64,000 nt of DNA. Source: Marsupella aquatica (Eukaryota; Plantae; Marchantiophyta). The stretch's first letter is position 1, and every line of letters starts with the position of its first letter. The translations under genes and the position numbers were made by a program. The notes beneath the pieces are model-generated. The model did no database searches. It had not been told where the DNA came from and saw only the letters and a list, made by a program, of their open reading frames with translations. The DNA is taken from NCBI GenBank assembly GCA_973895155.1, contig OZ316897.1:9695832-9759831 (forward strand), read 5' to 3'. Shown in pieces: positions 14,275-61,269 of this stretch.

Positions 14275-14640
14275 CCTGGACACTGGTGGAAACCCTGTCT
14301 GAGACTCCACGTAAAGGATTTTGAGGAGCCAGAATCTTCGATGATACACGTACATGTGTCTAAGCTGTAGGATTGAAGCTTCAGGAGCGGGCCGGGCGTA
14401 AGGATTTTCTTCGATTCTAAGGGAGCGATGGAATCGAGAGCAGCGGTGGGCGTGAGGAAGATCGATCGCGAGCAGGACTGGCTATGAGCCAGGCTTATAT
14501 CGGTTGTCTAAGTCAGTGGCCAATCCGAGCCAAGTGCGAGCGAGCGAGGCATTTCAGTTAGGTGGGAATATATTGAAGAGCGCTAGATACTAATTTCGTT
14601 GGTCAGTGAGTAAATTCTTACATTCGAATTGAGGAGAGCT

Positions 14641-18835: not shown

Positions 18836-21800
18836 CTACTTGTGATGCAATTGCAAAACCTGCAATACGTCACGGTGTCTAGAGAAACTCTCCAAAGGAA
18901 TCACTTTGGTAAATGCGTCAGCCGGGTTGAGTTTACCATCAATCTTGACTAGCTCAAACAAATTATCAGACACAGCCTGCCTGATAAAATGGTATCTGAC
19001 GTCAATGTGCTTCACTCTGCTGTCCATCACTTGGTTCACAGCAAGGTGGAGCGCACTTTGACTATCACAATGGAGCTTCACATTCCCCTGTGGCAATCCC
19101 ATTTCAGTGATAAGTCTATCCAACCAAATCGCTTCCTTTGCTGCTTCCGCAGCTGCAACATACTCCGCTTCTGTAGTAGACTGAGCAATACACTTCTGCA
19201 AAGTAGACCTCCAACTTATGCATCCACCGCCAAGTGTGAACACGTATCCTGTTGTTGATCTCCTTCGGTCCAAATCTTGTCCATAGTCAGAATCAACATA
19301 GCCAATCAATGATTTAGCATTATTTGCATTCGCATCCAATAAAAGACCATGATCCACGGTACCCTTCAAGTACCTGATAATCCACTTCACTGCTTCCCAG
19401 TGTACCTTCCCTGGATTCAACATGTACCTGCTCACCTTGCCCATAGCCATGGCAAGATCAGGTCTAGTGCAAGTCATCAAATACATGAGACTCCCCACTG
19501 CCTTGTCATACGGAACCTTTGACATCAACCCCTTCTCTGTGTCATCCGTAGGACAGAACGCTGATGATAACTTGAAGTGTGGAGCCAACGGGGTACTTAC
19601 TGGCTTGCTATTCCCCATGTTGAACCTTGCAATTACCTTCCTCGCATAACTGCTCTGTGTCAACCATAGCTTGCCAGCCTCCAAGTCCCTAGTGATCTCC
19701 ATACCCAAAATCCTCTTAGCTGGCCCTAAGTCCTTCATCTTAAACTCTGCACTAAGCAGTGCCTTGAGCTTAACAATCTCAGACCTATCCTTGGCTGCAA
19801 TTAGCATATCATCCACATAAAGTACTAAAACAATGAACCCAAAGACAACATTCTTTACCGGTTTCAAATACACACAAGGGTCAAATACACTTCTGTGAAA
19901 ACCTTGTGACCGAATCCAATCGTCAAACCGCTTATTCCACTGTCTTGGTGACTGCTTCAACCCATACAAGGATTTCAGCAATCTGCAAACCAATTCCTCC
20001 TGTCCTCTCTTCACAAAACCTAGCGGTTGTCTCATGAAGATCACCTCTTCCAATGTGCCATAGAGGAAAGCTGTGACAACATCCATCTGATCTAGCAGCA
20101 GACCAAACATTACAACAAGTACACACACTAGTCGCATTATAGAGTACTTAGCAACTGGTGAGAAGACCTCATTGTAATCCACACCTTTCTCTTGTGTGAA
20201 TCCCTTTGCTACCAACCTAGCCTTGTAGACCTTCGATCCACCTCCTATGGAATTATCCTTCAGCTTGTAAATCCACTTGCTGTCCACCACTTGCTGACCC
20301 TTAGGCAGCTTAACAAGCTCCCAAGTTTTGTTGTCCTTTAGTGACTGCATCTCCGTTTGCATTGCTGCAGTCCACTTCTGCTTCTCCTTTGAAGCACTTG
20401 CCTCATGAAATGAAGAAGGTTCCCTTTCTTCCAAAATTAACGCATCACCCTCATCATCAGCTGCAAACTCATCCTCTTGTAGTTGAGATGAATCAACCCA
20501 CTATCCATACCTTGGTGGAGCGCGTACAGTGCAACCAGATGTTCTTCTAGCCGATGACTCCGGTTGATCTGCGTGTGCTGGTACAATTTGAAGCTCAACA
20601 ACATCCACTTGTTGCTCACCAGCATCAACAAACTCCTCTGGTTCCTCTGGCACAGGAACCAGCTCCATAATTGGAGCAACTCCTTCTCTCCGGTCATGCA
20701 CCTCATAACCAATCTCCCCCTCAACGAGATCCGGGATAGGAGATTTTCTTTTGTTAGTACGGGAGACCTGAGTATTCTCCCCCTCCTTCAATAATCTGGA
20801 TTCATTGAAGGAAACATCCCTACTGACAACGAGCTTACAGGCAATAGGATCCCATAGCCTATAGGCTTTCACACCACTCTGGTACCCAAGAAAAACACAT
20901 TTCTTGGAGGTAGGATCCAACTTGGTCCTATTCTGCTTCGGTGTGAGAGCATATGCATCACTTCCAAAAACTACCAAGCCATGATAGTCTGCTTGCCGCT
21001 TATAGCGCATCTCAAACGGTGTTTTGAAATTGATAGCACTAGAAGGAGAAAGATTTACCAAATAAGCTGTGGTATTGACAGCTTCTACCCAAAATTCTTG
21101 TGGTAAACCTGATTGGCTCAACATACTCCGTGACTGCTCCAACAGTGTCCGATTGAGCCTCTCAGCGACACCATTCTGCTGCGGAGTATAAATTGTGGTG
21201 AGATGACGAGTTATCCCCTGTTCTGAACAGTATTCTTCAAATTCCATTGAAGTGTACTCCCCGCCGTTGTCTGACCTCAGACTCTTCACCCTTGTATCAA
21301 AACACTTGATCGTGTTTCCAGTCTGATTCTCCACCTGGGCCTTCCACTTCTTAAAAATGGACAAGACATCAGACTTATGCGTCATGAAATAAATCCACAC
21401 AAATCTTGAGTAATCATCAATAAATGATACATAGTACAACTTTCCAGAGTGTGAGGGAGTCGGGGATGGACCCCACACGTCACTATGTATGTACTCAAGA
21501 ACCGCTTTGGAACGATGAGTTCCAACACCAAAAGCACGACGATGCTGCTTTCCAAGAATGCAATGCTCACAAAACTCTAATTTACAAGATTGTAAATCAG
21601 AAATGAGTCCATTCTTCCGTAAGATAGCCAAACCCTTCTCACTTATGTGGCCTAGCCGTGAATGCCACAGTTGAGTCATCTCCTCATGAGACTTGGTTAC
21701 ATTGGCCTCTCCACATACAATATTGCCATGTAACACATACAAATTCTTTTGTCTACTCTCCTTCAAAATCACTGTCTCTCCCGACCTGACTTGAAGTTCA

Positions 21801-22966
21801 TCATCAATAACGCTCCATTGATGACCATTTGAATCCAACACACCGAGTGAAATCAGATTCTTACGCATGCCAGGTACATACCTGACTCCGGACACTGTGC
21901 GCACAGCGCCATCAAACATTTGAATCTTCACAGACCCAATTCCCTCAATTTGACAGGAGTGATAATTTCCCATCAGAACTGAACCGTTTGAAACAGAGTA
22001 AGAACTGAAAAACTCACGAATATAACAAATATGAAAAGAGCAAGCACAATCAAGAATCCACACATCATCTGCTCTCCTAGATGACGTGCACAGGGCATAC
22101 CCCCGGCTTCATAAAACATACTCATCATTGAGTAAATCAGCTTCTCCATCAGCCCTAGCCACATTTACCGATGAAGTTTCCGCTGCCTTTCCCTTACAGT
22201 CTCGCTTGAAGTGTCCAACTTGGTTGCACTTCCAACATGTCACCTGCCTCCTTTGAGGGGATTTACCCTTGGACTTAGATCTGGATTTAGATCTAAACTG
22301 GGTTCTACGGTCCCCAGTTGGTCGCTGCATACTCCTCCCACGGTTAACATTGAGGGCAGCACCAGATGATGAAGGCTGTGACGTGATGTGCATCTTCTGC
22401 TGAAGATCATCACTAAGCAGAGAACTTACCACGTTATTGTATGAAATGGTATCCCTATCACGATGCAACAACACTCGTGATAGGGACTGGTAAGATGGAG
22501 GCAATGAACTAAGAAGCTGCAGAGCCTTCGTCTCATCATTCAAAGTCTCCCCAAGGTTTTCCAAGTCAATGACCATGTCGTTGAAAGCATCCACATGGTC
22601 TTGCAACTTCATACCAGATTCCTTCATCCTGAAACTCATCAGTTTGTAGGAAGTGTAGAGCCGGTTTGACAACTCCTTGCGGTGATACTTGCTCTGCAAT
22701 TTCGCAAACAAGGACATGCAATCCTTATGTGCACCTAACTGCTTGATGATGGGAGGCATGAGATAGAGTGTAACACACCACACTCCCTGCTCCTGCATGT
22801 GGTCCCATTGTTTCTCATCAACATCGTCTTCATAAGGGCTCAGCAGTTGGCCCATCCCTGACGCATAGAGCACTCCCTTCACCTGCTTCTCCTATAGCAA
22901 GTAGTCAGAGCGCCCATCATACTTTGTCACTTCATACTTGGGTCCCCCAAGCTTGAAAGTCCCCAT
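18836..22966 (-). pseudogene. Copia gag-pol polyprotein in one frame, interrupted by three in-frame stops
   Basis: Zn knuckle CWKCNQVGHFKRDC; protease WILDCACSFH; integrase LWHSRLGH..CEHC, HSDVWGP, RSDNGGEY, QNGVAER; RT QMDVVTAFL, YVDDML; RNase H DRRSTTGY, KHIDVRYHF, NPADAFTK. Stops at 22892-22894 (TAG at a W position), 22109-22111 (TGA) and 20501-20503 (TAG). No frameshift. Confidence 0.95.
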
Positions 22967-30330: not shown

Positions 30331-31458
30331 TCGACAGAATAACTAAGCTAGATTTTCCAGTTTCTTCTCCTGCCCCAATGGAGTGGAGGTCCATCAATCG
30401 ACGTTGCTGACTAGTGAGTCAAAGACTATACAATGAACATTTATGAAGATCTTTCCAAGTGGAGACGATGTTGACAATGCAGCAAATTTCGTCAGTTATA
30501 CCCTCAGCTGAATCCTATCGTCCTCACCTGTTCACTTAGTTTGCCCGGCCGGTGTACCAGAAGCAATTGCAAGAAAGTTGTAGGATCACAGATCCTCCAG
30601 TGTAACAGCTAGGAACCGTAGCCTCGACTGGCGAACGTTACATTAGCCTCGTTTGACAGACCGAATCTTTCAATCCTTCGGATCGAATTAAAGAAGATGA
30701 GTATTTCATTACATTGAGCCAGCCTTCTATCTCATTGAGGGCCATGGGCTGAATCGTCACCACGATGCCTACGACTCGTGGAACTTTATTGGGGACATGC
30801 GGCAGCTAGCCCAGGCCCTTCTCTGAAGGCGGTGCGGTGCAATCGAGCTTCTTGGATTACTTCTGGTGATCCAATTCAAAGACGGTTCTAATGAATGTCC
30901 AAAGGTCGACTCACAAGTCTTATCGAGACTAACTGAATACTTCTGCTAAGAGCGGCCAAGTGAGAGAACAGTAGCAACAGTCATCATATTTTTGTTAACG
31001 ATTTGTAGATGGGATTCTGTGCTCAAGCTATGGTCCCAACACTTGAACTGAATACGAAACAGTACACGACATGAGTCCTTCTCCTTGAAGCATAAAATGT
31101 ACCAAAATCCCTGTCAATCTATACAAAACGGGATCAATTGTGACGAGCTCATCTCCCCACATTAAATTTCCTTTCGGATCTTTCACTACCGAGGTCATCT
31201 CCGTAGTCCATCGACTTTTGTGATATATCCCACTTTTTATCTGCACCTCAGGGCTTTCCGTTATCAAAACTTGACATCCACACTGATAGAGCCAGAGGGG
31301 AAATATATCAGAGGCCAACAAAATTACAACGACGTCCGAACATTCACATCAAATACATAGATCAAATCTGGGAATTCGAGAGTAAGTTCAAATCTTTCGC
31401 CGACAACTAAAGCTAGTAGCTTGACACTGAGTAGTTGAAGGCCCAACGATCGACAAGG

Positions 31459-33488
31459 ATGGCGAGCGGGCTGTTCATTGCTGTCTGGATTTGGTGGTTG
31501 CTGGTCCTGGCGTTTGAGCGTTCACGCATCGGGCATATCACCGCTGCAGCTTCATGCCCAGCCTACTGTCGGAATCGATACCAGGAAGAATACAGTAATG
31601 CCGATGACGGCATTGCCAGTGCCAACAATCTAAGTGCTCCAAGCTTCTCGCATGATCCTGACCACCATTCTTCATATGGGAGAGCGTTCCGTGGGCACGG
31701 ATGTGCGGCCCATCTGTTTGTGGAATTCGGAGCATACAGAGGCGGCAACGAAACGTTCACCATCCTCGGATTGGCGTCCAAGCCTCTCCACACTTACGGC
31801 CATCCCAGCTTCTCCTGCCAGTGGATTCCGCTCGCCAGTGCCGCTGCTGCTTCTTCAGACCATGGCAGAAGATTTGCTCTCGAAGGGGCGGTGACAAAGG
31901 ACTACCCAGACTATGGCTATGGGCGAGCGTACACCGTCGTGGTGATCACGTGTACTTTCGATGTGGGAGTTGGAACGGATTCCAAGGGAGGGGAGCTCAT
32001 CCTGCACGCTTACCACGGAGACGCGATGGGGAGAGAGGAACGAATCGTGGTTCTGTCGGAGAAGCCGGGAGTCTACAACTTGAGAACTTTTGATCCGCCG
32101 TATCGGTACGATTTTCTCTACTGCGGGTCCCCTCTCTTCGGACGCCTGAATGGGCGGCGAGTGCGGGAGTGGATCACGTACCACGACATGGTGTTTGGAG
32201 TGAGGTCTCATTTCGTTCTCTATGACGCCGGGGGAGTTCACGAGGCTGTGAGACAGGCACTGCAGCCGTGGATCAGGATGGGGCGGTTGTCCATTCAGGA
32301 CATTCGGTCGACAGCGGACTTCGACGGGTATTACTACAACCAGTTTCTGATGGTCAATGACTGCCTGCAGCGGAGCAAGTATCTTGCGAATTGGACCTTC
32401 TTCTTCGATTTGGATGAGTACATTTACGTGGAGCCGCCGCATTCCCTACATTCTCTGCTGGCTGAGCGACACAATCACGGTGCTCCTAATGATGCTTCAT
32501 CGGTGACTGAGTTCAGCTTCACACAGTACCGCATGGTCAAGAATCTGTGCCATTCATCAGCTGCATCAGCAGCAGGAGGAAGAGTGCCACACCGCACCCA
32601 GCCTACCTCCAAGTAAGCGCCTGGAATTCATGATTGCATGTATGAGTCAATGCAGCGGGATTTTTCCTGGTGGATGACAGTCCTTTCGTGACTTCATTGG
32701 AGAAGACCCCAACTTAATGATTATTATGCCTGCAGGGTCAAGTTATTTCCTATGAAGATTTTCGTCTGTTTGTTTGTACGCATATTATCATCTAGAAGCA
32801 GCTGAACTCACGTCTCTCCTATTCTTCTGAATTTCTCCATTATTTACTTAACTGACAAATTTTTTGAGAGTCATTTTGTACAGCCTCACTTTCTCAATTG
32901 TCGACAAATACTCTACATTCCAGAAAATAAATTTGCTTACCGACTCTGGGACTCAGCCAGTCTCTTCACCCCCCTCTTTTCACGGAACTCTGGTTGGGTA
33001 AAGCTGACCGTGAGTCAATCAAGACGACTGTGCGTCGATGTCAATGACGAGTAGGCTTGGCAGAAACAAATGCTAAGGAATTAACGTCTGCCCATTTGAC
33101 TAATGGATTGCTCAGGCAGTGGGGCTTTGAAAAGCTGACGTATCGAGACCTCTCAAGCTCCAATCGAGATGTGAAGTACGTATGCAATCCAAGAGCGGTG
33201 TATGCTACTGGCGTCCATGGAGTCGAACACTTTAAACGAGGATGGCAAGAGCGCTTTAACGAAACCATGGTCAGGTACTACCATTATCACGGGATCATTG
33301 ATATGGAGGACGAGAACGCCATGTGCATGGAGCTTTCGGACGACATGGACAACGTGCATAACTTCACTCAAGCAAGGGGTCCAAGCGGAGAGGAAGGAGG
33401 TGCCGTGCAGTACGATGGTTCCATGGTGCTTTATGCACCCATGGCCAAGAAGCATGAAATTGAAGTGCTCCAAAAGCTCCTTCACTGA
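31459..33488 (+). CDS. GALS: Glycosyltransferase family 92, galactan beta-1,4-galactosyltransferase (GALS-like), ~508 aa
   Basis: Exons 31459-32612 and 33116-33488 (GTAAGC donor, GACTAAT branch site, CAG acceptor). Motifs FGAYRGG, DYGYGRAYTVVVITC, YDFLYCGSPLFG, FDGYYYNQFLMVNDCL, FFFDLDEYI (DxD), WGFEKL, YATGVH, RYYHYHG. N-terminal TM. Confidence 0.92.
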
Positions 33489-35201: not shown

Positions 35202-38200
35202 CTACAATGTCTTAGACTCCACTTTTTGCGGTTCACTGGTCAGGTTGAGTTCTGCCATTTGCTTTTCCACAGAAACGAGACCAATTTGAGATATGTACCT
35301 GCTCATATACAAAAGAGACGGATCAATACAACAAATCATGATACTTCAACTGTCAAAACTACAAATCCTTACATAATAACTAAGAAGCCACATATTCCTA
35401 GGAGACACGGTTAAGAAATAACCACTCCCAGTAAGTTCAAATCTATGGTTTATAAGATAATAGCGGTACTTAAACAGCTACCATTCGTGTACTGTATAAG
35501 AAAAGTTCCAGGAATTTAGCCGTCTGATATGTTTAAGTACACGTGGTGAAAGATTTTGCTCTGTGACGGCAAGTAGGAACAAAACAAACGCTGGCTGCCT
35601 TGCAGAGCCAACTCGGACTGTCACTTAATCGATAGGCACCTGAGAATACTCGACAAGTACATATATTTATTCGATTATGGAACTACAGTCAATTATTGGT
35701 GGAGCTTCACAGACCATTGTTTGACCAAAACTGTAGTGAAACTCAAGGTTACGGTGAGTAAACCCTGTGACGAAAAGCTCCAAGGATTGCCAATGAATGT
35801 TACTATCAGTCGAGAGGGATAATAGTATGACATTCGTAAATGTTCTACGAGAAAAAGGAACGGAAACTTTCGGAAGAGATCAGAAGATCCAAAGGTGAGC
35901 ATGAGCATTACTGACCACTAGAAGTTCACAACTCGTAAACTTCCAGTTGCTTCTTCTTAGGGACATCTACGCCAAGGAATGTCTACGCCTAGCAGGAAAG
36001 GAAAGGAGAACAGAAGAAATTGGGATTCTCACAAGACCACAATCAACCCCAGTTCCCAGACGCTAGGAGCTCGCAACATATGGACAGGTCTTTGTAACAG
36101 ACTTTTCAGAACTTCAACTGGTCGTCAGTCCCGATTGATTTGACAATTGTTTACCATCTTGTCTGATGGAACGCCACTCACTTCGGATAGCCCAATCAAA
36201 TGTCATACACAAAGCAAACATACGAGTTTACTTCTTTACTGACCAGGGCTAAGTGACGAGTAGTTAACCAACAAAATGAACTTGTTTCTGTGCAGTAGGG
36301 GCAATGTACATACCAGCCCAAAAGGAGAATCAGGCCACCCGCAATGAAAATGAGGAAGAGCACGTTTAGAAGAATAAACCAGCTATCCGATTTTATGGCA
36401 ACATGCAAAAGCAGGAAAAGAGATGCAACCAATGCCACCAGCACAGCCCTGATGACGAACCAAGTTGGCCTCTGCGTTCAAATCAGGGACCACACATATT
36501 GGGTTATCGACAATGACCTGACGAAGTCAAGCAAAAGAAAACGCATGAACTCATCACGTCTTCTTCATGTTACCATTTACATATTCGTCCAATAGGCTGC
36601 AGCAAGTCCCTGCCTCTGAAACCATTGGTCCTTAAACCTAGGATGAAGGGGTTATAAAACAAAGCTAGTGCGAACTAGAGATAATCGGTAAGCCGTCGAC
36701 AATAGATCTTCCAAGTCCCTACATGATCTCGGGGAGTACTGTTTTCTAAGAGGAACTTAAATGGTTATATATTCCAAAGGAGCCCCACGGAAGTAGATAA
36801 GTCTTGTGAGGGTAACAATCTCTTCAGAGCTTCTCCATAACGAAACCGAAATTAACGAACTGCAACCTCAAATCCCGAAACAAGTACGCAAAATGAAAAG
36901 TTTGTGGTCACCATCCCCACTTACGCAAATCGGTTGCTAGTCATTCTCTGAGCTGTAACTGAAATTGAACTGGATTCAGCCCTAATCATCATAAGATTGA
37001 AAAGAGAGCTTACATTCACACCGGACGCCAAAGCTCCCAGTAGGACAGCCTCTCCGACTCCTGGTTTATTTTCAGAGAGCTCCTTTGCATCGTCAACAAG
37101 GTCCGCAGGGACTGATCCCGTTCTGTCTTTGACTCGCGATTGGAATCCATTCTCCACCGCCCTTACCGAAGATCCAGTTGGCTCATTGGGAGATATCGCC
37201 TTTAAATCCGGAAGAATCGAACGACTTGTGCCCTCTAAATTCGATAGTGGCTGTGAAATGCCGTTATTCTCTGCAATTGTCTCGGCCTCCCATCCCAGGG
37301 AAATGTTTTGTTGCTCCCGAGCTTTCCTTATCCTAACCTCCAACGACAAAGGGTTGATTGTGTCCTCTGGGTCTAATTGCTGAGGATAGAATGGAGTAAT
37401 ATCCGAATCTAGCCTCGTACATTCGTCATCTTGACTCCGTGGCCCTGCTGACAATGTTCCCAGATTTGAAGCGGCGTCGTCTACCTCTGCATCGGTGGTG
37501 TCCGTCTTCTTCTCTTCTAAATTATTTTGATTTGTGCTGAATTCCTCTGGATCTGATTGCGGGGCATTGTGTTCCCCACTCAGTGAACAGAATTCCATTT
37601 CGGTAGGTTGTTGTTCGTCCGGTAGTTCCTGAGATACCTGAAATACCTCACCATCCTCATTCTCCTGGTCCTCCTTTGGTTCTCTAAGTGTTCCACTGGG
37701 CGATAAAATGCGCCCGCTCAGCTCTTCCGAATGTGGTTTCTGAGATTTCCCACCACTTATTGAATCGGTCTCTCCATTTGCTCCTTCAAAGTCATCAACC
37801 TCCAGCGATCCTCGCCGGCTCAGCTCTTCTGAATGTGGCTTCTGAGATTTCCCACTACTTATTGAATCCATTTCTCCGTGTGATCCTTCAAACGCATCAA
37901 CCTCCAGCCATCCTCGGCTGCTCAGCTCTTCCGAAAGTAGCTTCTGAGATTTCCCACCACCTATTGAGTCGATCTCTCCGTGTGATCCTTCAAAATCATC
38001 AACCACCAGCGATCCTCGCCCGCTTAGCTCTTCCGAATGTGGCTTCTGCGATTTCCCACCATTTGAATCGATCTCCCCGTGTGCTTCTTCAAAATCATCG
38101 ACCTCCAGCGATTCTTGGACGCGATTATGACCCTCCTCCTTAGTGGGATCCTTCCCCACATTTTGTCTGCAACTTGTAGGAAGCACATGAATGCAATTTT

Positions 38201-38609
38201 CCGAAGAGACCTCAGTTGGGTCGAAATGGGGGTCATCTTCAACCTCCGACATGGGTCTACTCAACTCATCTGTGACTGAATGGGTGAGGCTGTGTATGCC
38301 CCTTTCGGTCAGCTTGTTGAAGTCCTCACACTCAGGCGCTGTCGTGTTCACAATTGCAGCGCCTTTCATAGGTCGAAGGTCAGGCTTCTCAACACCGCCA
38401 CTGAGGACGTTGGTATTCTGATCATTGCCTTTGACTTGTTTGAATAGATGCTTCTGGTCCAGCAACGATTTCTCCTGTAATATGAACTGCTCGGCAACAA
38501 GTCTATCCTCCAGCTCAATCGCCTCCAGACTTTCATCGGCATCTGACTCTCCTGCTGTTGTTGTTTGCGACAGCGCTACAGCCTCAGTGGGCATTTCTGT
38601 GGACGACAT
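35202..38609 (-). CDS. Membrane protein with a C-terminal two-TM Pkr1-like domain and a long acidic N-terminal extension, ~616 aa
   Basis: Exons 38609-37014, 36471-36314 and 35298-35202 (GT-AG, phases 0 and 2, in frame). Spliced C-terminus GEAVLLGALASGVN|RPTWFVIRAVLVALVASLFLLL...LILLLGW|YISQIGLVSVEKQMAELNL resembles a conserved small plant two-TM family. The Pkr1 link is from recall, not a search. Confidence 0.75.
37710..38115 (-). repeat. Coding minisatellite, 4 x 96-99 bp
   Basis: Encodes four copies of about SLEVDDFEGSHGEIDSISGGKSQKPHSEELSGRG. Confidence 0.92.
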
Positions 38610-39318
38610 AGTTTTCACTACAATACCCTTCGAATGTCGGAAAACAGATGACGCTAGACAACACCTCCAGTATGAGTTTTTTCCCTAATAGACAACCCAA
38701 TTCAGGCTTCGGACGTCATCCCGAATTCGACCTCTCTGCCCCTTTCACCTCATTCTCACGTCGGAGATTCAACCGATGGCCTAAACATCGTCAACCAAAA
38801 TTCCCCCCCTGGAACCGTTTCCCGCCGTTTCAGTCTGCCATTCGAGAACCTTCATCCTCATTAATGCCTTGCTCTACTCTCTACCTCGGCGCGCTTTCTC
38901 GATGCAAATTAGGTGCTTGAGTCGAATCAAGAAACTAGGGGGGAATGGGTACTTCCTGGACCGGGGCAAAATTTAAAAATCTCATCAACCAGTACTACAC
39001 CCCACCCATCCTACCCACGTCCTTTCACTGTACAAGGACGTGGGTGGGATTTACGACGTCCTACTCTGCTCCTCTGCTCCTCTGGTAACGAAAATGAGCA
39101 GCTGGTGCACTATTACTGCACGAGTACGGCATACTCTTCATCAAGGGTCCGTCTTACAGAATAGCTCCGAGCCAAACGCATCCTACGGTATATATTCCAT
39201 GGTAGACAACAGTTGATAAAATTGATCAGGACCCGTATTGGACTATTGGCTATGTCCAAAACCTACCATCGAAATGTGAGACAGTTCAGCGCATTTTGCA
39301 CGCTTGAATCTTTCAACA

Positions 39319-44546: not shown

Positions 44547-46101
44547 TCAAGTCTTCTCCAGGCTATCTGTATCTTCTAATGTTATCTCTGCCAGGGGAAG
44601 CTGGAACTTGTTTGATTCAACCGTCACAGCGCCCGACGAGCCCACGGAACAGCCAGACTCCTTTATGATTAGGAACACAAGAAGCTTGGAGTGAATTGGC
44701 CGGGGCGAAGTCTTTGTTCTCGTGTAAAGTAGGCTCGTATCGAAGTCGATTCCAAAGTAATCCTCTGTTAGAAGATCCCTTCTGCAATTCGGATCCAGAC
44801 CAGACTTGAGTATGGCATCCATAACAGCATGATTTGTGCCATGGAACACCGTTCTGAGGCCCCTTTTCTCAATACACGTCAAAGTTGCTTCGTCGGCTTC
44901 ATCTGCAGCACTTTCGAGAAACAGCTCTGAAAAATTAAGGAAAACAAGGTTTAGGCTAACAGCAAACTCTCCCACTTGTTCCCCTTACTGCCCTCAGAGA
45001 TTTCTTAGCGAGCTCTCTCAGTTAATTGTTTCTCTTATTGCCCTTAGCATTATCTCAGCGAAGTCTCTCATTGACCTCAGCGTTTTCTCCTTCAGGCTGT
45101 AGGTGCATCGATCAGTAAGTTGAGAGATGAAGCAAGCTTAATTGTATCCTAATCCCGATCCTAACACCTGATAGCCTTACAAAGCAGAGGACTTCCGGAC
45201 AGCTGGTCACTGGGTTTCCAGAAACATCTTCACGACTAGACATTATATGTTCTCTAGCAATTCTCTGCACGAATCGCGAGCAAACAAACCAGCTGTTGTA
45301 ATGAAGGTTCGCCCTGAAGAATCTAAGCTAATTTGCAAGATCATCAACTATAGTTGAGCAATATTTAAACAGCATATATGCAAGAACATGGCACCGTTGG
45401 GGATTTACTCTTCATAAAAGGTGGATGGAATAGAGTGCTGATGAAAATGGATAGAGCGAGTGAACCTAGAAGCTGCTCCCCAGGAGGAGTACTGGTATCC
45501 GTAATCTTGAGAAGAGATTCGATGAAGTTTTCATATGGTGCATGCCCCGGCCCCAGATATGGGTTCTCCCGTATTGTGCATGTTTCTACTCCTTTCAATG
45601 CCAGGATCCTATTCAAACTCGCTGTCTTACGGATGCGGTCCACAGCCATCGCGAGTATCTGCTCAAAACCATAAAATATAAAAACCAAAACTGGAAGGTA
45701 TGAACCTGAGCTTCAAGAAGAATAGACAGTGTTCAAAACGTAAACATTCACAAATCAACTCATTCATGTACCTGACGTCGAAGCTGCGTGTCGTTTGCTT
45801 TGACCACAACCTTGAAAAAGCTCCTTGCATCCCAAGGGAACTCCACTACAAGGTCCACTTCACTTTCGGTTCCAAGACCTATCTGCTTGAGTCTCGTCAG
45901 ATCCCCTGGGGAGAGGAACCGCGTGCTTATAGAACGTTCACCATTCGAGATGGCTTTGACAACCAGCTCCGAAAAATCGAAATCCAGAAGGGACTGAAGT
46001 ACACCTTCTCTGTCCTTGTGGTAGACGCGGAGAAGAGACCGAAAGTGAGTCCCAGTCACGGGAACAGTTGTGACTGCTGAAGGGTTAAGCTTGGGAACCA
46101 T
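44547..46101 (-). CDS. PARP-like ADP-ribosyltransferase-domain protein with a degenerate WWE-like region (gene A), ~300 aa; 5' end uncertain
   Basis: Exons 46101-45772, 45658-45466 and 44926-44547, in frame. C-terminal domain LRTVFHGT...AILKSGLDP..RR...DYFG..FDTSLLY...KLLVFLII...AVTVESNKFQLPLAEITL follows the PARP-catalytic pattern FHGT / GFD / YF / S..Y / P..I. Confidence 0.72.
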
Positions 46102-46926
46102 TCTGGCTTGCGAATACTAGTGAATTGCATGCAATCTTTTGCACTCTACGACCGGCCAGAGACAGGCCTGTTGAACAGTATAGTGGCTCGAGATCACTGT
46201 CCTGGTGAATACTCCACCTCAGGTCATCATCCTCGATGGAATCTGCTGATACCTTTCAGAGTATGATCTTCAGTCCCTTTTCAGTCTGGCTAATAATTGA
46301 TATACATGATTCTCAATTTATCGATCAGACTCCCGGCGCGGGAGCGAATAGACATTTCAGGAAAGAAAACAGTCACGTTCTAAATACGTTTGGAAGCATT
46401 GAAAAGAAACAGAGTCTATGTCACTCACGGTGCACGTTCTAGGGAGGATTGCAACAAGCTTAGAGAAGGCTCTATAATTGTGGCACACGGAAATATACAT
46501 CTGCACTGCAGGTAAGTTTGGTAGTAAGAGGGCTCAGACTCGGGACTCAGACAGCGGCGCTGAGTTAGCCGCCTTTCCCAATTCTCTATGAATTCGATGA
46601 ACCAGTACACTAAACATCATCGAAGAAACAATGTCACTCTCAGTTGTACAAAACGCTACAGTAGGTCTCAACGTCACTTTTTGTATGTTCAATGATTGCA
46701 CATCCACACGAGTCAAGGTACTCTGGAATAATTATAAAATTTCGTGACTAGTGACTAGAAATCGTCCAGAATTACGATGGTCACGGTTCGGCGGCGCTTC
46801 AATCTAACTAATAAGGCTATCTAAAGCTACACTCTGGAGCCTAGAAGTTTCCAAGAGAGGCAACTTTGAGGAAGGCAAGCACGGGCCTGAGCAATGCTCG
46901 GGCATTCAGGCTAGTACTTTAAAAGT

Positions 46927-47012
46927 ACATTTCAATGTAGTGGGGTCGTGACTAGAAGGAGAGTAGTACAGTGACATTTCAATGTACTGGGGTCGTGACT
47001 AGAAGGAGAGTA
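46927..47012. repeat. 39-bp direct repeat (period 47) in the region between the divergent WWE/ART genes
   Basis: ACATTTCAATGTA(G/C)TGGGGTCGTGACTAGAAGGAGAGTA at 46927 and 46974. Confidence 0.9.
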
Positions 47013-48257
47013 AAGTGTACACAAAAATTGCTGCGAGGCGGCCAGAGACTCTGGACAGTACTAGCTAGTCTGGGGCAGAATCACAGTTGATGTTACAGTT
47101 CGCCTCAGGATGACAGTTTGAATTATTGTCCAATCAGGCTAGGAACTGTACCGGTATTTTCCGTAGCTGGGTTGCGGATAGTAACATTCGCTGGGCCTTC
47201 AGTTCTGGCCAATGGAAGTCATGATGGATTTTCTCCATGGTATGATTCTTTTTTATTTTGCAAGCCATTGATACGTTGTGAATTATAGCATTCTGCAATA
47301 GGTCATGATTCGAGTTGCCATAAACTTTCGGTTTATTAGATATGCTGACTCTTTATTTTGCAACCGGGCACCATGGTCGAAGTAAAAATGAGCCGTCGCT
47401 CAAGTTAGAGTGAATTACGGGACGCACCCAACGTCCAGCAATACAGAGAGCTGCCATTATTCGCAACCAGGAATCGGTACTTTTGCCAAATTGATCATAG
47501 AAAATGACTTTGAAAGCGCATTTACAATGTGACACAGTTGTCACTGTCAATCTAGAAGCCAGGATTCAACCGTAGTTTCCACGGCTGCATCGGAATCTGG
47601 ATTTTGAACCGATGTATAATATATATGGATAGATTCTATATGGAAGCTGCACATAATTTAGCAATGGCTAATGCGAGTTACGGTTGGATATCTATATCCA
47701 GTAAACTTGTGCGCTCTTTATTTCACAGCAAGGTACTAGACTTACTCACTAGCCTTTCAAGATTGCAAATTCCTGCATTCGTGGTGGTGAATCGTAGCCA
47801 TCTCCAATTTCAGCTGCCTCAATATATCAGTATAGGACATGGTTGTCGCCACAGCTGGTTCCGATAGTGACATAGTCAAGGAAGAATATTTGTCACTGAC
47901 GGTCAACACTAAGTACACGATTTAAGCGTGATTGCGGTAGCTAAATCAGCAACTGTACCATGACTTAGCTAGCTCGCATTGTAGAGGGCACCCAATTCAC
48001 TCCGAACTACGATGTTGCACTAGGTACTAAGAGTCTAAGACGGAGCTCTATAAACGTTATCTCCCGGTGAGGAAATTCTCCAACTTCGGGATCCGCAAAT
48101 CTTCGCACCTCTTTCAATCGACCTTTGGCAGCTTCCACTCTTGTAGACCGATTGCTTGAGCACCTTCTGAGAGATCGTGAGCCATAGAGCCTGGCAAGCT
48201 TTTCTGTCTGTAACTATCTCTCTAGCATTTTGCCGAGCCTTCTCTCGATCTTTGAAG

Positions 48258-50267
48258 ATGTGCATCCTCGACGAAGTTTGCGAAGAGCCGACTGAGCAAG
48301 GAGTGTGGTGGCGAGATGACACTGAATGGCGTTTGTACAGTGCCGAACACCAGGCCCTCATTAGGAAGGGCATGGCCGAGAAGGTCAGGGAGATAGACCT
48401 CGGAACAATTGTGTCTGTTGTTCATCCTTTGGGGGCGAAATATACCCTCGACTTGCACAGTATGCGGCAAGTTGCTGTTAACAGCGGGCAGGTAAGGCCA
48501 GTGATGGTTGTTGACGCTGCGACTGTTGGAACACAACCAAGTCCACGATCAGCGGTAAGTATGCGGTACATCCGTCTGCATACGTCCTCAAACTTCATTG
48601 ACTGTTTCTTTTGACACTAACGGTGGTACCAACGACCTTTCAGACTTGATTGAATTCTGGCTTGACATTCCGATCTGTAGGCATACATATAACGTGGTTG
48701 CTGGTTCAGGTTCTTCCAAGCTTTAATTTTACTTTGACATTGATCTGGAGGTCTGGACTGCAACGGAGCTTATGTATGGTGTATGAACAGAGTATGAATG
48801 TTGTCTTGTATTCATGCCAGCGACGTGCTTCCTTGATTGATGTATATCTTCACTTATAATATTGAGATTTTTCCATGGATGTTCGGTGCCGAAAAGACAT
48901 TGCTGCCACCGAGTTCATTCCGCAATCTCCCTCTCAACCTGCACTATCAGGGCAATGACGGGAACTTTCATCGATACGGGACCGCCATAGAGCAGGCACT
49001 ATTCCAAAGTATGACGTGTGGGAGCCAACGTACCGTAGTGGTGCTAGATGAGGGTTCAGGCCATTTTTTGAGCTTCGACTTTGAAGCCATGGAACAGCGC
49101 ATTGTCTCACATTTTGATAGCAACGAAGAGCCCGTTCTTTCAGACCACGCACCGGTCAAAGTGATTGTTGAGGTTCCTTGGGATGCTGCGGCGATGGCAT
49201 CGATGGCCGCAAAGGCCGATAAATGTTTGAGACGGAAGGTAAGTGGTGCTCTCGATCTCCCTCTTCACCTTAGCTTAGAACTGCACCGAGACTGACCAAT
49301 TATCTGACCAAACTCTGCGTTATGTAGCTATCCTGGATCAGTCAGGTCGATTCAATGTTCAATGAAACAATCCGAGTGACAACTTCCAGCCCTGACCTGC
49401 AACCAATCTGTTTACTTTAGAAATTCGTGAGTTGCTTAGAGTGTAATTGTGGAAGTATCAATTAATTAAGTAGTCAACTGTTAGTTTGGTGATTACCAAT
49501 ACTTCGCTTCTACTCGGTGAAGGCGTAAAACATTAATTCGCCTCCTCAAGCTAGAATACAATTCAGTTCGATGACTTTTTATCTTTGCTGTACTCTTTGC
49601 GAAGATTCTTTCTCTGGTAATAGAAAGGTACAGGAGCGACGAGCGCTTGGACAGCATCCTTGAGGTGAAAGCACAACCCAGGAAAGTCATTTCCAAGAGC
49701 AGTCGGGCGTGTTCTGTAGCCCTATACGAGCGGTTCATTGATTCGTTGGACGAAGTGCTGCAGACATTCCCCAACGATGCAATGGGTGAGTCAATTGTCA
49801 ATAAATTGTCCTCGATTAATTCAAAACATACTTGAAATTTGTGGAGATCGTTAGCATTCTTGAACATTAATTCCTAAGTCTGGCCTGAGTTTAGGGCGTT
49901 CTGAATACTCTTTTTAAACCATGCAGGAGATATGCTAAAAGCTGCAGGCACAAGAGAAGTTGGAGGCGGCCCAGTTCAGATAGCGTTCAAACCAGTGGAT
50001 CGGGAGACAGCAATTCCCTCAAAGCGAAAATCATTAGAGGCGGCGGTGACGCCTAAAGTTGCATTCTGGATGTCCATGGCGGCACCAGTGGCGGCTGCCC
50101 ATGCGACTGTGTATGGCTGCGTTGTCCAGATTCTCGCGTATCTAGTGATCATCCCCTTTTCTTCTTTGAAGAAATCTACTCAGCCTGAGATTGATCGCTG
50201 TTCCGGGTACGTTGAGGTCGCTAGACCTGAGCACGGACTTCCTCTGGCCGAAATCACTGTGACTTGA
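48258..50267 (+). CDS. Tandem-WWE protein with a degenerate PARP-like domain (gene B), ~390 aa
   Basis: Exons 48258-48554, ~48867(or 48897/48951)-49238, 49605-49785 and 49927-50267. WWE1: VWWRDDTEWRLYSAEHQALIRKG...YTLDLHSMRQVAVNSGQVRPV. WWE2: LHYQGNDGNFHRYGTAIEQAL...FDFEAMEQ. C-terminus ..SGYVEVARPEHGLPLAEITVT is homologous to gene A. Confidence 0.75.
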
Positions 50268-54877: not shown

Positions 54878-56068
54878 ATGGATGGCACACAATCTGGTGA
54901 AAGGGGAGGAGGAATCGAGACGCTCTTTCCAGGTCTGTCCGACGAAATCACTCTGGGATGCATTGTAACCAAAGCGTCATGGAGAGCGCTGTGTGTACTG
55001 GCGAGTGTCAATTTGGCCTGGAAGAGAGCCATTGAGGAACGAGAAGTCTACCAGGAAGCGAACTCAATCAAGCCAGACTTTGCTTGTTTTCAAGTCAATC
55101 CTCGCTTCTAGAATACCAGCTAGTCCTCTGTGATCTAGAGAAGCAGTGGATACCTCTGCGGCATCATCGCCTTCCATCTTTCGTGGATGTCAAGGCACGT
55201 TTCGTGCCACGTTTCGTTCCACATATTTCCAAAGGAGTCGAAGATCTACCCGTGATGCTTGATGGCAAGCTTTATGTTCTGGAAATTTACACAAATGAGT
55301 TCTGGGGAGCAAGACAAGTATATACAAGATTCCAGGTGCTGGACATAGGAGCGTGTCACCGCACTTGGACAGTAACCTCAGGCACGAGGATGAAGCGTGG
55401 TATTGAACGTTTGCATATCTGGCGATGGAAAACTCTACGTAGTCTCTGCGTATTTTGACAATGTGAAGGTTTTTGATCCAAGTAGGAACGAGTGGTCTTT
55501 GATTGTGGACAAGCCAGATATATTCCCGCCGTTCGACCGGAGGTATAAATTCAGCACGAACTGTAGGAAATACATGATGGCCTGTGTGAATAAGGAAATC
55601 TACTTTTCCATATGGTGTGATGAATGGCGTGGCAGAGATTGGATACAGTTCGGCATCATATTGGTGTTGAATTGCTCCACTGAGAAGTGGAGAGTAGTAA
55701 ACAACACCCTGTCGACGGCCCGAGGGTGGTTTGTGATTCGTGAACAGCTTTACAATCTCTCACAGTGTAGGTTGGAAGTGTATGATCCCTCCTCAAATAC
55801 CTGGGACATGGTCCAGCCTGTTCGGGATGATAGGTTTTGTCCCGAGGAGGACTCATATTTAGTTGTGCGTCCGGCCCCTTGCAGCGAAGAAGTTATACTT
55901 ATGATGCAGAGAAACGGTTACCACGGAAGAAACTTTCTCTGCAGGTCTGTTGGATTTGGAGTGCGTGGACTATCGTTAGACTGGCAGATGTTGCCTTGTC
56001 ACTGTGATGATATGAAGCAAGGTAGCTATCTCCTCGACTGTGTCGAGATTAAAGCTCTACTTCCTTAA
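54878..56068 (+). pseudogene. F-box/kelch-repeat gene with two frameshifts
   Basis: F-box LFPGLSDEITLGCIVTKASWRALCVLASVNLAWKRAI (ORF 54878-55111); kelch-like VMLDGKLYVL (ORF 55084-55458); GDGKLYVV..VKVFDPSRNEW and LEVYDPSSNTW (ORF 55397-56068). Confidence 0.75.
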
Positions 56069-57912: not shown

Positions 57913-60492
57913 TTAACCCAAAACATCCAGAAGAACTCCACTCGGTGAGCAAATGGGCCTAAAGTCGATGATGAAATTATTGGGTAAAAATCCAAACCCA
58001 AACCTTCCACTGGCATACTGCCAGACTCTACCCTCTACCTCATTGTCCATCTCTGGATTTAGCCCAAAATCCAGTCCCAAAATCCGATTCGTGCACAGCA
58101 TTCCAACTACTTCCTCAACAAGCTCATCATGGATTCTCCTCGTCACCTCTTGCTGCCCACCCATGTCTGGATAGAATTTGGGCCAGATTCTCTGTCTTAT
58201 ATTGTACATGCCCTGTTCCAAGTCTGGAAGGGGTGCCATTATTGTTCGGTCAGATTTAGCCGTCCAGAAAACCGAGCCACTATGAGTTGTGCCAAGACAT
58301 TCACCCACTCGTCGACACACAATACCACCTTGATCATCATATAAAAGCAGAAGAAAATCAAGGCCCATGGAATCACATATCCCCTGCAAAACAGCCACCC
58401 CGTTGTTAAGTTTAATTTCTTTCAACAATCATGCTTTGATACTACATATTCTGATGACATATTATTGACCAAGGCTACGAGTAGAAAAACGGAGTTCGAT
58501 AACTCCAATGCTCTTTCCACTTTGGTCAAAAGGTTTCAGGATTTCAAGATCACTATCTCCAACAACTAGGTTAGCTAGCTTGTAAATATCATCGAGCCTG
58601 AAGGGCAGCGTTGAACTCTACATCCGGGACAACCTAAATCATTCAAAACAGACGCAGTAGAGAACAGCCATTCCTGTTATAGAACACTTCCGACTATCAA
58701 GTCCAGTCGTGAACATATTCTTTCGAGAGGAAATATACAGCTGCTAGCACTTGGGCCGGGCGACCCGTGAGTCTCACGTTAGGGCCTTTACATTCCAATT
58801 CCCTCCCAAAAGAAAGAGATACGTGAAAATTTGATTCTCTAAAAGTTCGCTTGGCATCCAAGCGCGTGGAATTCAACCCAGTGACGAGCCTTAGTCAGGT
58901 TCCTATTAGCAGTACTTACGGCAATTGTGGGATACCTTCCAGTTGGATCCCACAAAGAGCAAAAGCCAACTACGGTCAGGGCTTGCATGGGAGGTCCAGC
59001 ATTCCCCTAATTGTGTCCAACCCTTGTCACCGCAATGGGATGTAAAAAAGGACATTTACTTTCAAGAAGTTCGCAAGACCCTGCTGCCCAGGATCTTTAA
59101 ACTCGCGCGAAGGAAACCACCACGACTAATATGTTTCCTACTTTGACGGCTGTTTTCGGCACACAATGAACTGATTCATGCCCCCATAAGGTAACGAACG
59201 CCAAGATGCATGCCTGGCATTGTGCCCTGGCCAATAACATGAACTTCATCGACCCTCAAGTGCACGGCCCAGCCAGGAAATACCGGGTTAAATGGGCAAG
59301 CAAGATAGCCAAAGAAAAAAACAGAGCGTTATCGACATGTATAACAATTGCAGAGCAAAAGGAGAACAACACTAACCTTCCAGAGACCTTGCAGTGGGCG
59401 TTCCTTGGTAGGCCCAGTATCCCTCACCTTAACGAAATGTTCAGGCTCACAAGTTCTGCGACCTTGAATAAAGGCACGCTCTTTCTCTCTTCTCCTTTGC
59501 CTCCGGACTGCTCGTTCTCCGCCTTGACTGGTCACTTTGCTCGCAAGAAACTGAAACATCTCGTATTGAAAACTTCCTGGAGGACTATGTGCATATTTGT
59601 CGGAATCAGGACTTGGACTTGACCCTGCAGCAGCAGCTGCTGCAGCTGCGGCCAGGTTACCACTGGACCCAAAAGACGCAACCACTGCAGCCTCAGCGAG
59701 ACTCCTGTTGCCCACAAATTGAGGTTGCTGCAATTCCTCCATGACAATGTGAAACTTTCCCACAAAATGCAGGTCAACAACTACCAGCCCCGAAGGTGGA
59801 GATGGCTGTTCCAGATCAAATTCCGGCCCTAACCCTACAAAAGGATTTTTCCTTCCTGCCTTTCGCTTCCCAGGGGATTGGCCTCTACTTGAAGAGCTTT
59901 GTGCGCAGGTTGCGGTCCCTAAAGCACCCCGAAATGGTGTCACTGACTGATCGGGATCGAAGAAACAGACTGGCCTACCAATGTCTGACAACCCAATCCA
60001 GACAAAGGGCACCTTGCATACATCATAGGAACTGGGACGAGACGGAGTGACGCGATATCCGTTCACAAAGTGAGACCCCCACTCGAAAACAACGAGTGAT
60101 CCATGGCCTCCGTGATCCACCCCTCTCCAGAATCCAACCAAATTCTCCAACTTGGTCAATACAGAATAGAGAACTTTAAAAGCCACATTCCGCCGTCCCC
60201 AGTTTTGAACAGATGTTTGCGTTCCCCACCGCCTCTCACACATAGGAAGCCAAACCTTTTTGTCATCTTTACAGAAAGCCCTCAGATGTCGGCACACAGC
60301 CGAACACTTGGAAATGTCAGAAGGCGAGAGGAAGGAGAGGACAGTGGAGAGGGAATCGTCACCAATGTCACACAAACTTATGCACTTCTCCACCATCCCC
60401 TCCGATTCTGGACCAAAAACTGCCTCGTCATGGGCTTCTTCCGTCCCACATGCGACAGCCTCCTCCTGCTCTTCCTCCTCTCCGCCCCTCAT
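57913..60492 (-). CDS. F-box protein, At3g12350-like, ~528 aa
   Basis: Exons 60492-59377 and 58383-57913. F-box SLCDIGDDSLSTVLSFLSPSDISKCSAVCRHLR..DDKKVWLPMCERRWG; family motifs ENLVGFWR, LVVFEWG, SPPGSF, EPEHFVK..PT..RPLQGLWK|GIC, EGRVWQYASGRFGFGFL. Confidence 0.88.
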
Positions 60493-61269
60493 CTGATGAG
60501 AGGCAAAGCAATGTACAGGAGACTCATCAGGAATGGAGGGCACGGTCCAACATTGACACACTGCCAACTCAAAACTCAGCATGTAGAGATGAGAATGGAG
60601 CAGATATTCTTGCTCCTCTCATTAACAAGTTAGTCAAGGCTCGGCTCTTTGAAACCCTACAAATTCAGGGAAGGCTGCCAAGAGCCAATCCCTGAGGGTT
60701 TTCAATATGCACCTCCTGCCGTGCTCCTCCTCTGCTTTCTTTCCCCTTCTGTACAATTTGATCCCAATCAAAGAACGGGACCAAGATCGAATTCTCCCTC
60801 TCCCTTCCGTTCCAATCGCTTCCAACCCAAGCACGACTCCAGTATCAAATGAGTCACAACCAATGACACCAACTTGGGTCCAAACTCGACCAAATCGTTC
60901 ACTGACTGCTCCTTCTTCTGCTTCCTCCCTCCGCCGTGCCCGCCTTCGTCTCCACGCGGAAGCACACTCATTAACCGAAGCACGCGGCTGGCCGAACGAC
61001 TTCAGGGAACTGTTAGCACCAATGTGGGGGAATTGAGCCTACTGGTGCCTTCCTGACGCGTCCTCGTTTCCTCCCTTTACTTTCAATTCCCACCCAAATA
61101 TCATGTACCCTTAGATCAATCAAACCACAAGACAAAACGTATCTGAGGCGCCGAGGACGGTCCTTCTGTAGAAAGAGCCTCACGAGAGCATGAGGAGTGA
61201 GCGTGGCGTCAACACACGCAGCATGCACCGCAAAACCCCAGTAGCATCAGTTTGGCAATTCAGCGACCC

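Follow-up and report, generated by a model that had tools for sequence, protein, structure and literature searches.

A 64,000-nucleotide stretch of the genome of the liverwort Marsupella aquatica (assembly GCA_973895155.1, contig OZ316897.1, positions 9,695,832 to 9,759,831; hereafter the window) carries two intron-bearing, divergently oriented genes, A and B, which are a genuine and conserved gene pair of the PARP family, of a kind so far undescribed in plants. Judging from its predicted residues, gene A would be an active mono-ADP-ribosyl transferase (mono-ART), and gene B a non-catalytic reader, predicted to bind ADP-ribose through the first of its WWE domains. On balance, we favor the interpretation that A and B are a co-transcribed pair, a writer and a reader/regulator, derived from one ancestral gene that was split; cooperation of such a writer and reader is plausible.

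The ATG-to-ATG distance of the two genes was 2,156 bp and all their reading frames were open (Table 1), in agreement with the earlier note on this DNA, made from the sequence alone, which had described two divergent genes with starts ~2.1 kb apart. The motifs quoted there were also recovered: gene A carries FHGT and DYFG, gene B carries FKPV and AFWMS, and LPLAEIT is common to the two. Both genes were found where its gene models had placed them; its acceptor for exon 2 of gene B did not stand, as the in-frame alternative at 48867 was less favored than 48897, which was placed by homology to the annotated Calypogeia fissa proteins P0050 and P0051. The coding sequence of gene A is divided into 110 codons, 64 codons plus 1 base, and 2 bases plus 125 codons and the stop. 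Both genes have a phase-0 intron after LRRQ (A) or LRRK (B) and then a phase-1 intron. Exon 1 of gene A, which encodes a degenerate WWE-like N-terminal domain and the block VEFPWDA...LRRQ, was 57–72% identical to exon 1 of the annotated C. fissa homologs P0039–P0044. Exon 2 of gene A (TIRENPYL...YENFIESL), which covers a helical linker and the first, N-terminal section of the PARP fold, was 64–82% identical to its C. fissa homologs, with a junction codon for E, as in P0042. The exons were searched singly, and whole-protein analyses were done on natural C. fissa homologs, P0039 for A and P0050 for B.

Table 1. Genes, exons and active-site segments of the A/B locus (positions in the window; ART, ADP-ribosyl transferase)
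Feature	Position	Strand	Description
Gene A	exons 46101-45772, 45658-45466, 44926-44547	-	3 exons, protein of ~300 amino acids
Gene A exon 1	45772..46101	-	110 codons, ATG at 46101, phase-0 donor after; based on open reading frame and splice sites
Gene A exon 2	45466..45658	-	64 codons + 1 base, phase-1 donor G/GTTCAC
Gene A exon 3	44547..44926	-	ART domain core, including stop codon
FHGT, gene A	44835..44846	-	triad His, then Gly binding the nicotinamide amide
YFGIDFDTSLLY, gene A	44724..44759	-	triad Tyr, Ser at +8, Tyr at +11 (translation and family alignment)
Ala-Val at start of strand AVTV, gene A	44625..44630	-	third-triad position, not Glu; uncertain by one residue
Region between start codons	46102..48257	.	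2,156 bp, presumed bidirectional promoter region
Gene B	exons 48258-48554, 48897-49238, 49605-49785, 49927-50267	+	4 exons, protein of ~386 amino acids
Gene B exon 1	48258..48554	+	99 codons, canonical WWE domain (residues 16-82, window 48303-48503)
Gene B exon 2	48897..49238	+	114 codons, second WWE-fold domain with Trp residues lost, and VEVPWDA...LRRK block
Gene B exon 3	49605..49785	+	60 codons + 1 base; linker and N-terminal part of PARP fold (ILSLVIERYR...YERFIDSL)
Gene B exon 4	49927..50267	+	pseudo-ART core, including stop codon
FKPV, gene B	49986..49997	+	Lys-Pro stands where FHGT has His-Gly; also kept in P0050, P0051 and L009
AFWMSMAAPVAAAH, gene B	50061..50102	+	replaces DYFG...S..Y, with Trp for the first Tyr, Ala for Ser and His for the second Tyr (hhalign)

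Comparisons of the two genes indicated that they have a common origin. When exon-wise similarity was scored against shuffled sequences, the corresponding pairs gave z values of 8.5 (A exon 1 with B exon 2), 9.0 (A exon 2 with B exon 3) and 4.3 (A exon 3 with B exon 4), and the non-corresponding pairs stayed below 2. A profile built from B-type proteins only aligned to one built from A-type proteins only with an hhalign probability of 98.7% (E 2.9e-16, 245 columns), with residues 108–383 of B falling onto residues 12–282 of A. This end-to-end alignment indicated that gene A equals gene B minus its first exon. The proposal that the genes are diverged paralogs with common intron positions and phases was therefore confirmed.

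The likely starting point of the pair was indicated by a gene of the charophyte Chara braunii, CBR_g12815 (P0016), which belongs to the same family and is annotated only as a WWE domain-containing protein. In its 374-amino-acid product, a canonical WWE is followed by a second, WWE-like region and by a PARP domain that carries FHGT and DYFG; the protein ends at the same last strand as A and B. The gene has 4 exons, and its three introns equal those of gene B in position and phase (0, 0, 1). Because this four-exon gene has the same introns, the ancestor of A and B was one gene. Unlike A and B, CBR_g12815 is a single gene that unites the canonical WWE seen in B and the His and Tyr that are intact in A, and it looks like the undivided ancestral state. 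A homolog search with the Chara protein alone retrieved only itself. At its locus (L010, BFEA01000177.1) the Chara gene spans 42 kb, with introns of ~14, 6 and 21 kb.

The simplest history would start from one ancestral four-exon gene, whose product had a WWE domain, a WWE-like one and a short catalytic PARP domain, followed by an inverted duplication in the liverwort lineage and then by complementary loss. Gene A dropped the first exon, with its canonical WWE, and retained a nicotinamide pocket in which His-Gly, Tyr, Ser and Tyr are all present. Gene B retained both WWE domains and swapped every residue of its PARP fold that contacts nicotinamide adenine dinucleotide (NAD). The complementary losses described in the earlier note were indeed found, A being without a canonical WWE and having an intact pocket, and B the opposite. 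An out-of-frame open reading frame (ORF) upstream of gene A (46100–46255, minus strand, 'LRWSIHQDSD..LY') was considered as a possible WWE relic and was taken as chance; it had no Pfam match at E 10, and tblastn with B-type proteins was also empty there.

The FHGT column of gene A was conserved in the family alignment and aligned to the HGT of PARP12 and of Tpt1. Its Tyr, Ser (+8) and Tyr (+11) match the signature spacing of PARP1 (Y896, S904 and Y907). The strand AVTV, which precedes QLPLAEITL, was aligned to the PARP12 strand SIFVIF...Q..P, and relatives carry I, V, M or T where the third triad residue falls. As read from the alignment, the third triad residue of A is small and aliphatic, not Glu, which is the mono-ART pattern of PARP7, 10, 11, 12 and 14. 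In the published comparison of triads (PMC2848248, Table 2), PARP12 has H564, Y596 and I660 and PARP13 has Y787, Y819 and V876; PARP11, PARP12 and PARP14, with His-Tyr-aliphatic, are listed as mono-ARTs, and PARP13, with Y-Y-V, as inactive.

In gene B the corresponding segments have been replaced, and the replacements themselves are near-invariant among 4 B-type sequences (GPVQIAFKPV, AFWMSMAAPVAAAHATVYGC, QILAYLVIIP and CSGYVEV..EH.LPLAEITV). This near-invariance argues that B is a conserved pseudoenzyme and not a decaying copy. The NAD pocket is complete in A and entirely lost in B, consistent with the original observation that A keeps FHGT and YFG where B has FKPV and AFW. The B strand GPVQIAFKPVD (window 49971–49997) resembles the amyloid core of tau, VQIVYKPVD, and tau fibril chains were the only PDB sequence matches of P0050. 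We took this likeness as a coincidence; at the place of the catalytic His of A, it points to an invariant strand with a strong beta propensity.

The first exon of gene B matched the Pfam WWE domain above threshold (E 2.3e-9, 37.9 bits) and aligned to the WWE domains of TRIP12 and DTX1 in their ADP-bound structures, with the motifs W..W, Y.LD, M.Q and G..R kept. The Tyr, Gln and Arg of these motifs presumably correspond to those that contact iso-ADP-ribose in the RNF146 structure. Exon 2 of gene B matched Pfam WWE weakly (E 0.2). Exon 1 of gene A aligned to the second WWE of B with hhalign, and its Riccia homologs matched Pfam WWE weakly (E 0.004–0.01).

Assignment of the catalytic domain relied on relatives and on fold. 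Exon 3 of gene A gave weak Pfam matches to PARP (E 0.045) and Tpt1 (E 0.066), and exon 4 of gene B had no match to Pfam PF00644. A phmmer search with exon 3 of A against 1.8 billion representatives returned 38 relatives. The distant ones included five above the Pfam PARP cutoff of 26.7 bits (P0021, 73; P0022, 53; P0025, 35; P0027, 35; P0011, 29); as these pass the threshold and exon 3 of A does not, the link of the family to PARP is transitive. About 12 of the 38 matches were ankyrin-repeat proteins in which only the 25 residues after FHGT were matched, many times over, and these were rejected as motif mimicry. Against the PDB, the family profile found PARP12 at E 1e-3. The best profile match there was to Tpt1/KptA (E 2.4e-4), covering just a 35-residue HGT..GL.P..R motif, and we favored PARP over Tpt1 on the strength of the neighboring WWE domains, the Y/S/Y signature and the matches by fold. 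When exon 3 of A alone and P0050 alone were compared to PDB sequences, only noise was obtained (E2F8, and tau through 'VQIAFKPVD').

AlphaFold2 models were made of C. fissa P0039 and P0050 (57–77% identical), with the window exons included in the alignments. The P0039 model had a mean predicted local distance difference test (pLDDT) score of 87.6, and its top Foldseek matches were all PARP catalytic domains; it superposed on PARP12 (VIA) with Z 12.7 over 145 residues at a root-mean-square deviation (rmsd) of 3.3. For the P0050 model (pLDDT 82), the Foldseek list was led by the tandem WWE of DTX1 (E 4e-6) and Deltex and by the central domain of ZAP/PARP13. Residues 14–92 of P0050 formed a WWE fold (HUWE1 WWE, Z 10.9, rmsd 1.8), residues 107–195 a second WWE fold (TRIP12, Z 11.1; RNF146, Z 10.3) and residues 215–386 a PARP fold (PARP14, Z 10.7; PARP12, 10.4; RCD1, 9.8). 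Leads from the ESM Atlas, used as leads only, agreed with PARP. On these proxy models, the ART fold anticipated for both proteins was recovered (best Z 12.7 and 10.7), and the description of B as a tandem WWE with a dead PARP domain held, the first WWE by its Pfam match and the second by its fold, its sequence signal being weak.

Both genes are under purifying selection, with ratios of nonsynonymous to synonymous substitution (dN/dS) of 0.17–0.45, below the value near 1 that had been named as grounds for doubting them. A 4.7-kb orthologous contig from another sequencing run (L009) showed synteny to the B locus, the two being 79% identical in nucleotides. Its exons aligned to those of B without indels, while the introns were 73–79% identical with many gaps, and dN/dS between B and L009 was 0.17 overall (exon 2, 0.19; exon 3, 0.23; exon 4, 0.15). 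Between the window and the C. fissa copies, dN/dS was 0.30–0.45 for A and 0.22–0.26 for B.

Variation within the genes was also observed. In exon 3 of gene A (44773–44793), one DNA run of a related organism (organism B) contained a divergent haplotype with the frame open. This haplotype had a cluster of substitutions and a compensated +1/-1 pair of indels after GLDP, which together changed the loop NCRRDL to LCRSSH, a sequence resembling CRSSHL of the C. fissa paralog P0007. The change suggests gene conversion or a hypervariable surface loop. In gene B, runs of the same related organism had an in-frame TCA insertion at 49012 (exon 2) on part of the contigs and a 10-bp deletion in intron 1, a pattern consistent with preservation of the frame in coding parts.

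Relatives of gene A were found in several liverworts and beyond. At least 10 annotated copies or fragments of A-type proteins are present in C. fissa, and others were identified in Marchantia polymorpha (Mp4g19060, one of a tandem cluster), Riccia sorocarpa and, as a fragment, Taxus chinensis; the next relatives after these plant proteins were short PARP domains of protists. The best identities between the window and C. fissa were 57–82%. Marchantia and Riccia are complex thalloid liverworts with tandem A-type clusters; that of Marchantia (L007) comprises three A-type genes within 16 kb, and the Riccia cluster (L008) comprises R1sor_016313, 016320 and 016328.

The divergent arrangement itself persists in C. 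fissa, a leafy liverwort. There, at least 5 loci (L001, L003, L004, L005 and L006, on 3 contigs) have A and B head-to-head, 1.8–5.6 kb apart. Trees of single exons (A exon 3, B exon 1 and B exon 2) recovered the same two groupings, (L004, L006) and (L003, L005), at 96–100 support, and this agreement of the partner trees indicates that A and B were duplicated together, as a unit, and several times over. Synonymous divergence (dS) of 0.8–1.5 between the window and C. fissa indicates that the pair is older than the split of these lineages. The expectation that related genomes would keep the pair was borne out for C. fissa; the Marchantia and Riccia clusters had no B-type gene within 10 kb, and the family shows birth and death.

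According to the interpretation that we favor, A and B would be transcribed from the common 2.2-kb intergenic region and would act in one pathway as writer and reader/regulator, with the dead PARP fold of B offering a surface for docking or regulation. Several findings weigh against it. Some C. fissa pairs have a B shortened to 190 or 268 amino acids, or an A in fragments. There is no B within 10 kb of the C. fissa copy P0001, which has A relics beside it, nor within 10 kb of the A clusters on Marchantia chromosome 4 and in Riccia sorocarpa; these solo copies indicate that A can exist without an adjacent B. The 4 sequencing-run matches to the locus were all genomic contigs spanning introns and intergenic DNA, and none was RNA. 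Exon 3 of A lies under the Pfam PARP gathering threshold (PF00644; 13.7 versus 26.7 bits), the PARP domain is short, with ~145 of 185 PARP12 residues aligning, and the structure models are of homologs and not of the window's own joined proteins.

The same solo A-type genes, in Marchantia, Riccia and C. fissa (L002), together with the several C. fissa pairs that have a decayed partner, would be expected if A and B were independent, with neither common regulation nor functional coupling, and their head-to-head position merely reflected an old inverted duplication that later segmental duplications had copied. A complex prediction for P0039 and P0050 gave no answer (score 0.00, controls not run) and counts neither way, giving binding no support and also no evidence against it. 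We consider independence unlikely, if deserving of serious attention, because the pairing survives across two old pair lineages (dS 0.8–1.5) whose partner trees agree, and because the strong conservation of the dead fold of B (dN/dS 0.15) implies a retained function of the PARP-shaped surface.

A second alternative accepts the pair and questions the enzyme, in that gene A might also be non-catalytic, a compact PARP-like sensor of NAD or ADP-ribose or a scaffold, which would make the locus one of two pseudoenzymes. The shortened domain (145 of 185 PARP12 residues at rmsd 3.3) and the sub-threshold Pfam score of exon 3 would fit such a protein, as would the Phe or Trp that replaces the triad Tyr in some paralogs and the higher dN/dS of A than of B. 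The window gene, however, has kept His-Gly, Tyr, Ser(+8) and Tyr(+11), all of them; His-Gly-Thr is near-invariant from Chara to the liverworts; and H-Y-aliphatic is what proven mono-ARTs have (PMC2848248, Table 2; PMC2964712). We regard a non-catalytic A as quite improbable.

Plant ADP-ribosylation has been described with PARP1-3, the inactive SRO/RCD1 proteins and PARP6/8-like proteins in bryophytes and algae, and the earlier note had placed A and B outside PARP1-3 and SRO. No WGR or PARP_reg domain was found in any Pfam scan of the exons and homologs, and there is no Glu at the third triad position, which sets the genes apart from PARP1-3. The same scans gave no RST match, and A and B end 4–10 residues past the last PARP strand, with all homologs and the Chara gene likewise stopping just beyond it, so that the reported absence of an RST domain from both genes was upheld. 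Among solved structures the family profile found PARP12, 3, 15, 16 and 10, and neither the family profile nor the B-only profile found RCD1 (5ngo) or wheat SRO1 (7plq) in the PDB even at E 10. The PARP domains of RCD1 and wheat SRO1 did match the B model at Z 9.8 and 9.6, with 13% identity, the highest among the PARP-fold matches; Z values in this list are tied within 1, so structure alone cannot separate the PARP clades. The placement outside PARP1-3 and SRO accordingly stood in part, with respect to domain content, the lack of a match to solved SROs and PARP12 as the best match.

Published classifications bear on this placement. Plants have members of clades 1, 2 (SRO) and 6, and clade 3, which contains the mono-ARTs with WWE domains, was without plant members (Citarelli 2010, PMC2964712). 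The SROs are defined by a PARP-like domain together with an RST at the C terminus (PMC2848248), moss SROs with more intact triads have been described (Jaspers 2010, PMC2848248), and the WWE domain of RCD1 has been presented as a reader of poly(ADP-ribose) (PMC10115779). That A and B are truncated SRO/RCD1 members without an RST is very improbable, since the RCD1-like layout of B (WWE with an inactive PARP domain), the RCD1 and SRO1 structure matches with their top identity and the moss triads are outweighed by the common end of all members after the last strand, the profile matches to PARPs other than RCD1/SRO1, a Z to RCD1 tied with or below those to PARP14 and PARP12, and a second WWE and exon structure held in common with the charophyte gene. 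The family might still be related to SRO as a sister group.

The closest likeness of the family as a whole was to the animal clade-3E proteins (PARP11, PARP12 and PARP7), which have a WWE N-terminal to a C-terminal PARP domain and a His-Tyr-aliphatic triad. PARP12 was the best solved match of the family by both profile (E 1e-3) and structure (Z 12.7), and NPYL...YE.F, the family motif that precedes the His, is similar to the N-terminal region of clade-3E domains. In contrast to clade 3E, the family is without CCCH zinc fingers, has a shorter catalytic domain, retains in A only a degenerate WWE-like domain and belongs to the streptophyte lineage. Gene B resembles PARP13/ZAP in having two WWE folds followed by a PARP fold without NAD-binding residues, and structures of the ZAP central domain (ZnF5-WWE1-WWE2) were among its top matches (E 1.7e-5 to 3e-4). 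It differs in having no zinc fingers and in its independent origin, from the liverwort duplication. We take the second WWE of ZAP to be the one that binds ADP-ribose (entries 7sz2 and 7sz3), while in B it is the first that looks canonical. With RCD1/SRO, gene B shares the status of a plant protein with a WWE and a PARP-like domain without triad; A and B differ from these proteins in lacking an RST and in having no sequence match to solved SRO domains, and A also in its intact NAD pocket.

For the divergent layout, a known counterpart is vertebrate PARP9-DTX3L, in which the gene of an inactive or weak PARP and that of its partner are divergent with a common promoter and the products cooperate. 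There the partner is an unrelated E3 ligase; in the liverwort pair an enzyme-like gene faces its own dead paralog, and any cooperation between the two is hypothetical. Comparison with the sensor/executor pairs of nucleotide-binding leucine-rich repeat (NLR) proteins is pure analogy. The pattern of family expansion and the variable loops of A, and nothing else, suggest, but do not show, a role in stress or biotic conflict. In the literature searched, no paper named the Marchantia or Chara gene identifiers of the family and none joined WWE and PARP with Marchantia; the lone match to WWE, PARP and liverwort was a review of hub domains (e.g., RST).

The intergenic region contained several short repeated or conserved segments. 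A 54-bp block (46600–46651), ~500 bp upstream of the gene A ATG, was 81% identical by blastn to a C. fissa block that sits ~350 bp upstream of the A-type gene P0042 (locus L001). A unit of ~43 bp, acatttcaatgta.tggggtcgtgactagaaggagagta, was tandemly duplicated at ~46925–47010. Short pieces at 46883–46915 and, in gene A, at 44791–44822 were found again on other contigs.

Elsewhere in the window, three long ORFs at 18836–22882 on the minus strand encode a copia-type gag with a zinc knuckle, an integrase and an RVT_2 reverse transcriptase, and together are a largely intact Ty1/copia long terminal repeat (LTR) retrotransposon. ORFs for a RING-H2 finger (14629–15873, plus), a glycosyltransferase of family 92 (31435–33488, plus, in two pieces), Kelch repeats (55397–56068, plus) and an F-box (59329–60582, minus) look like ordinary plant genes, and no entry of the public gene collection matched the F-box ORF exactly. 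An ORF of 565 amino acids (36921–38618, minus), the longest in the window among those left unexplained, had no Pfam match at E 0.01.

Based on these comparisons, the locus belongs to a conserved streptophyte family that combines WWE with a compact PARP domain and a mono-ART-type active site. In its widest form, which we regard as doubtful and raise only tentatively, the finding would reveal an old, undescribed streptophyte lineage of WWE-linked compact mono-ARTs, apart from PARP1-3, SRO and clade 6, that was split in leafy liverworts into an enzyme and a paralogous pseudoenzyme-reader, forming a head-to-head, co-duplicating two-component switch, possibly for biotic conflict. If this is true, the lineage spans Chara, the liverworts and one gymnosperm or more, with no member known from the angiosperm models, and B would read or control the mark written by A. 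How the plant SRO proteins arose is a further question on which the family may shed light. The co-duplicating divergent pair offers a natural system for asking how a pseudoenzyme persists beside an active-looking relative, and the A-type genes of Marchantia (Mp4g19060) make the enzymatic claim open to test in a tractable model.

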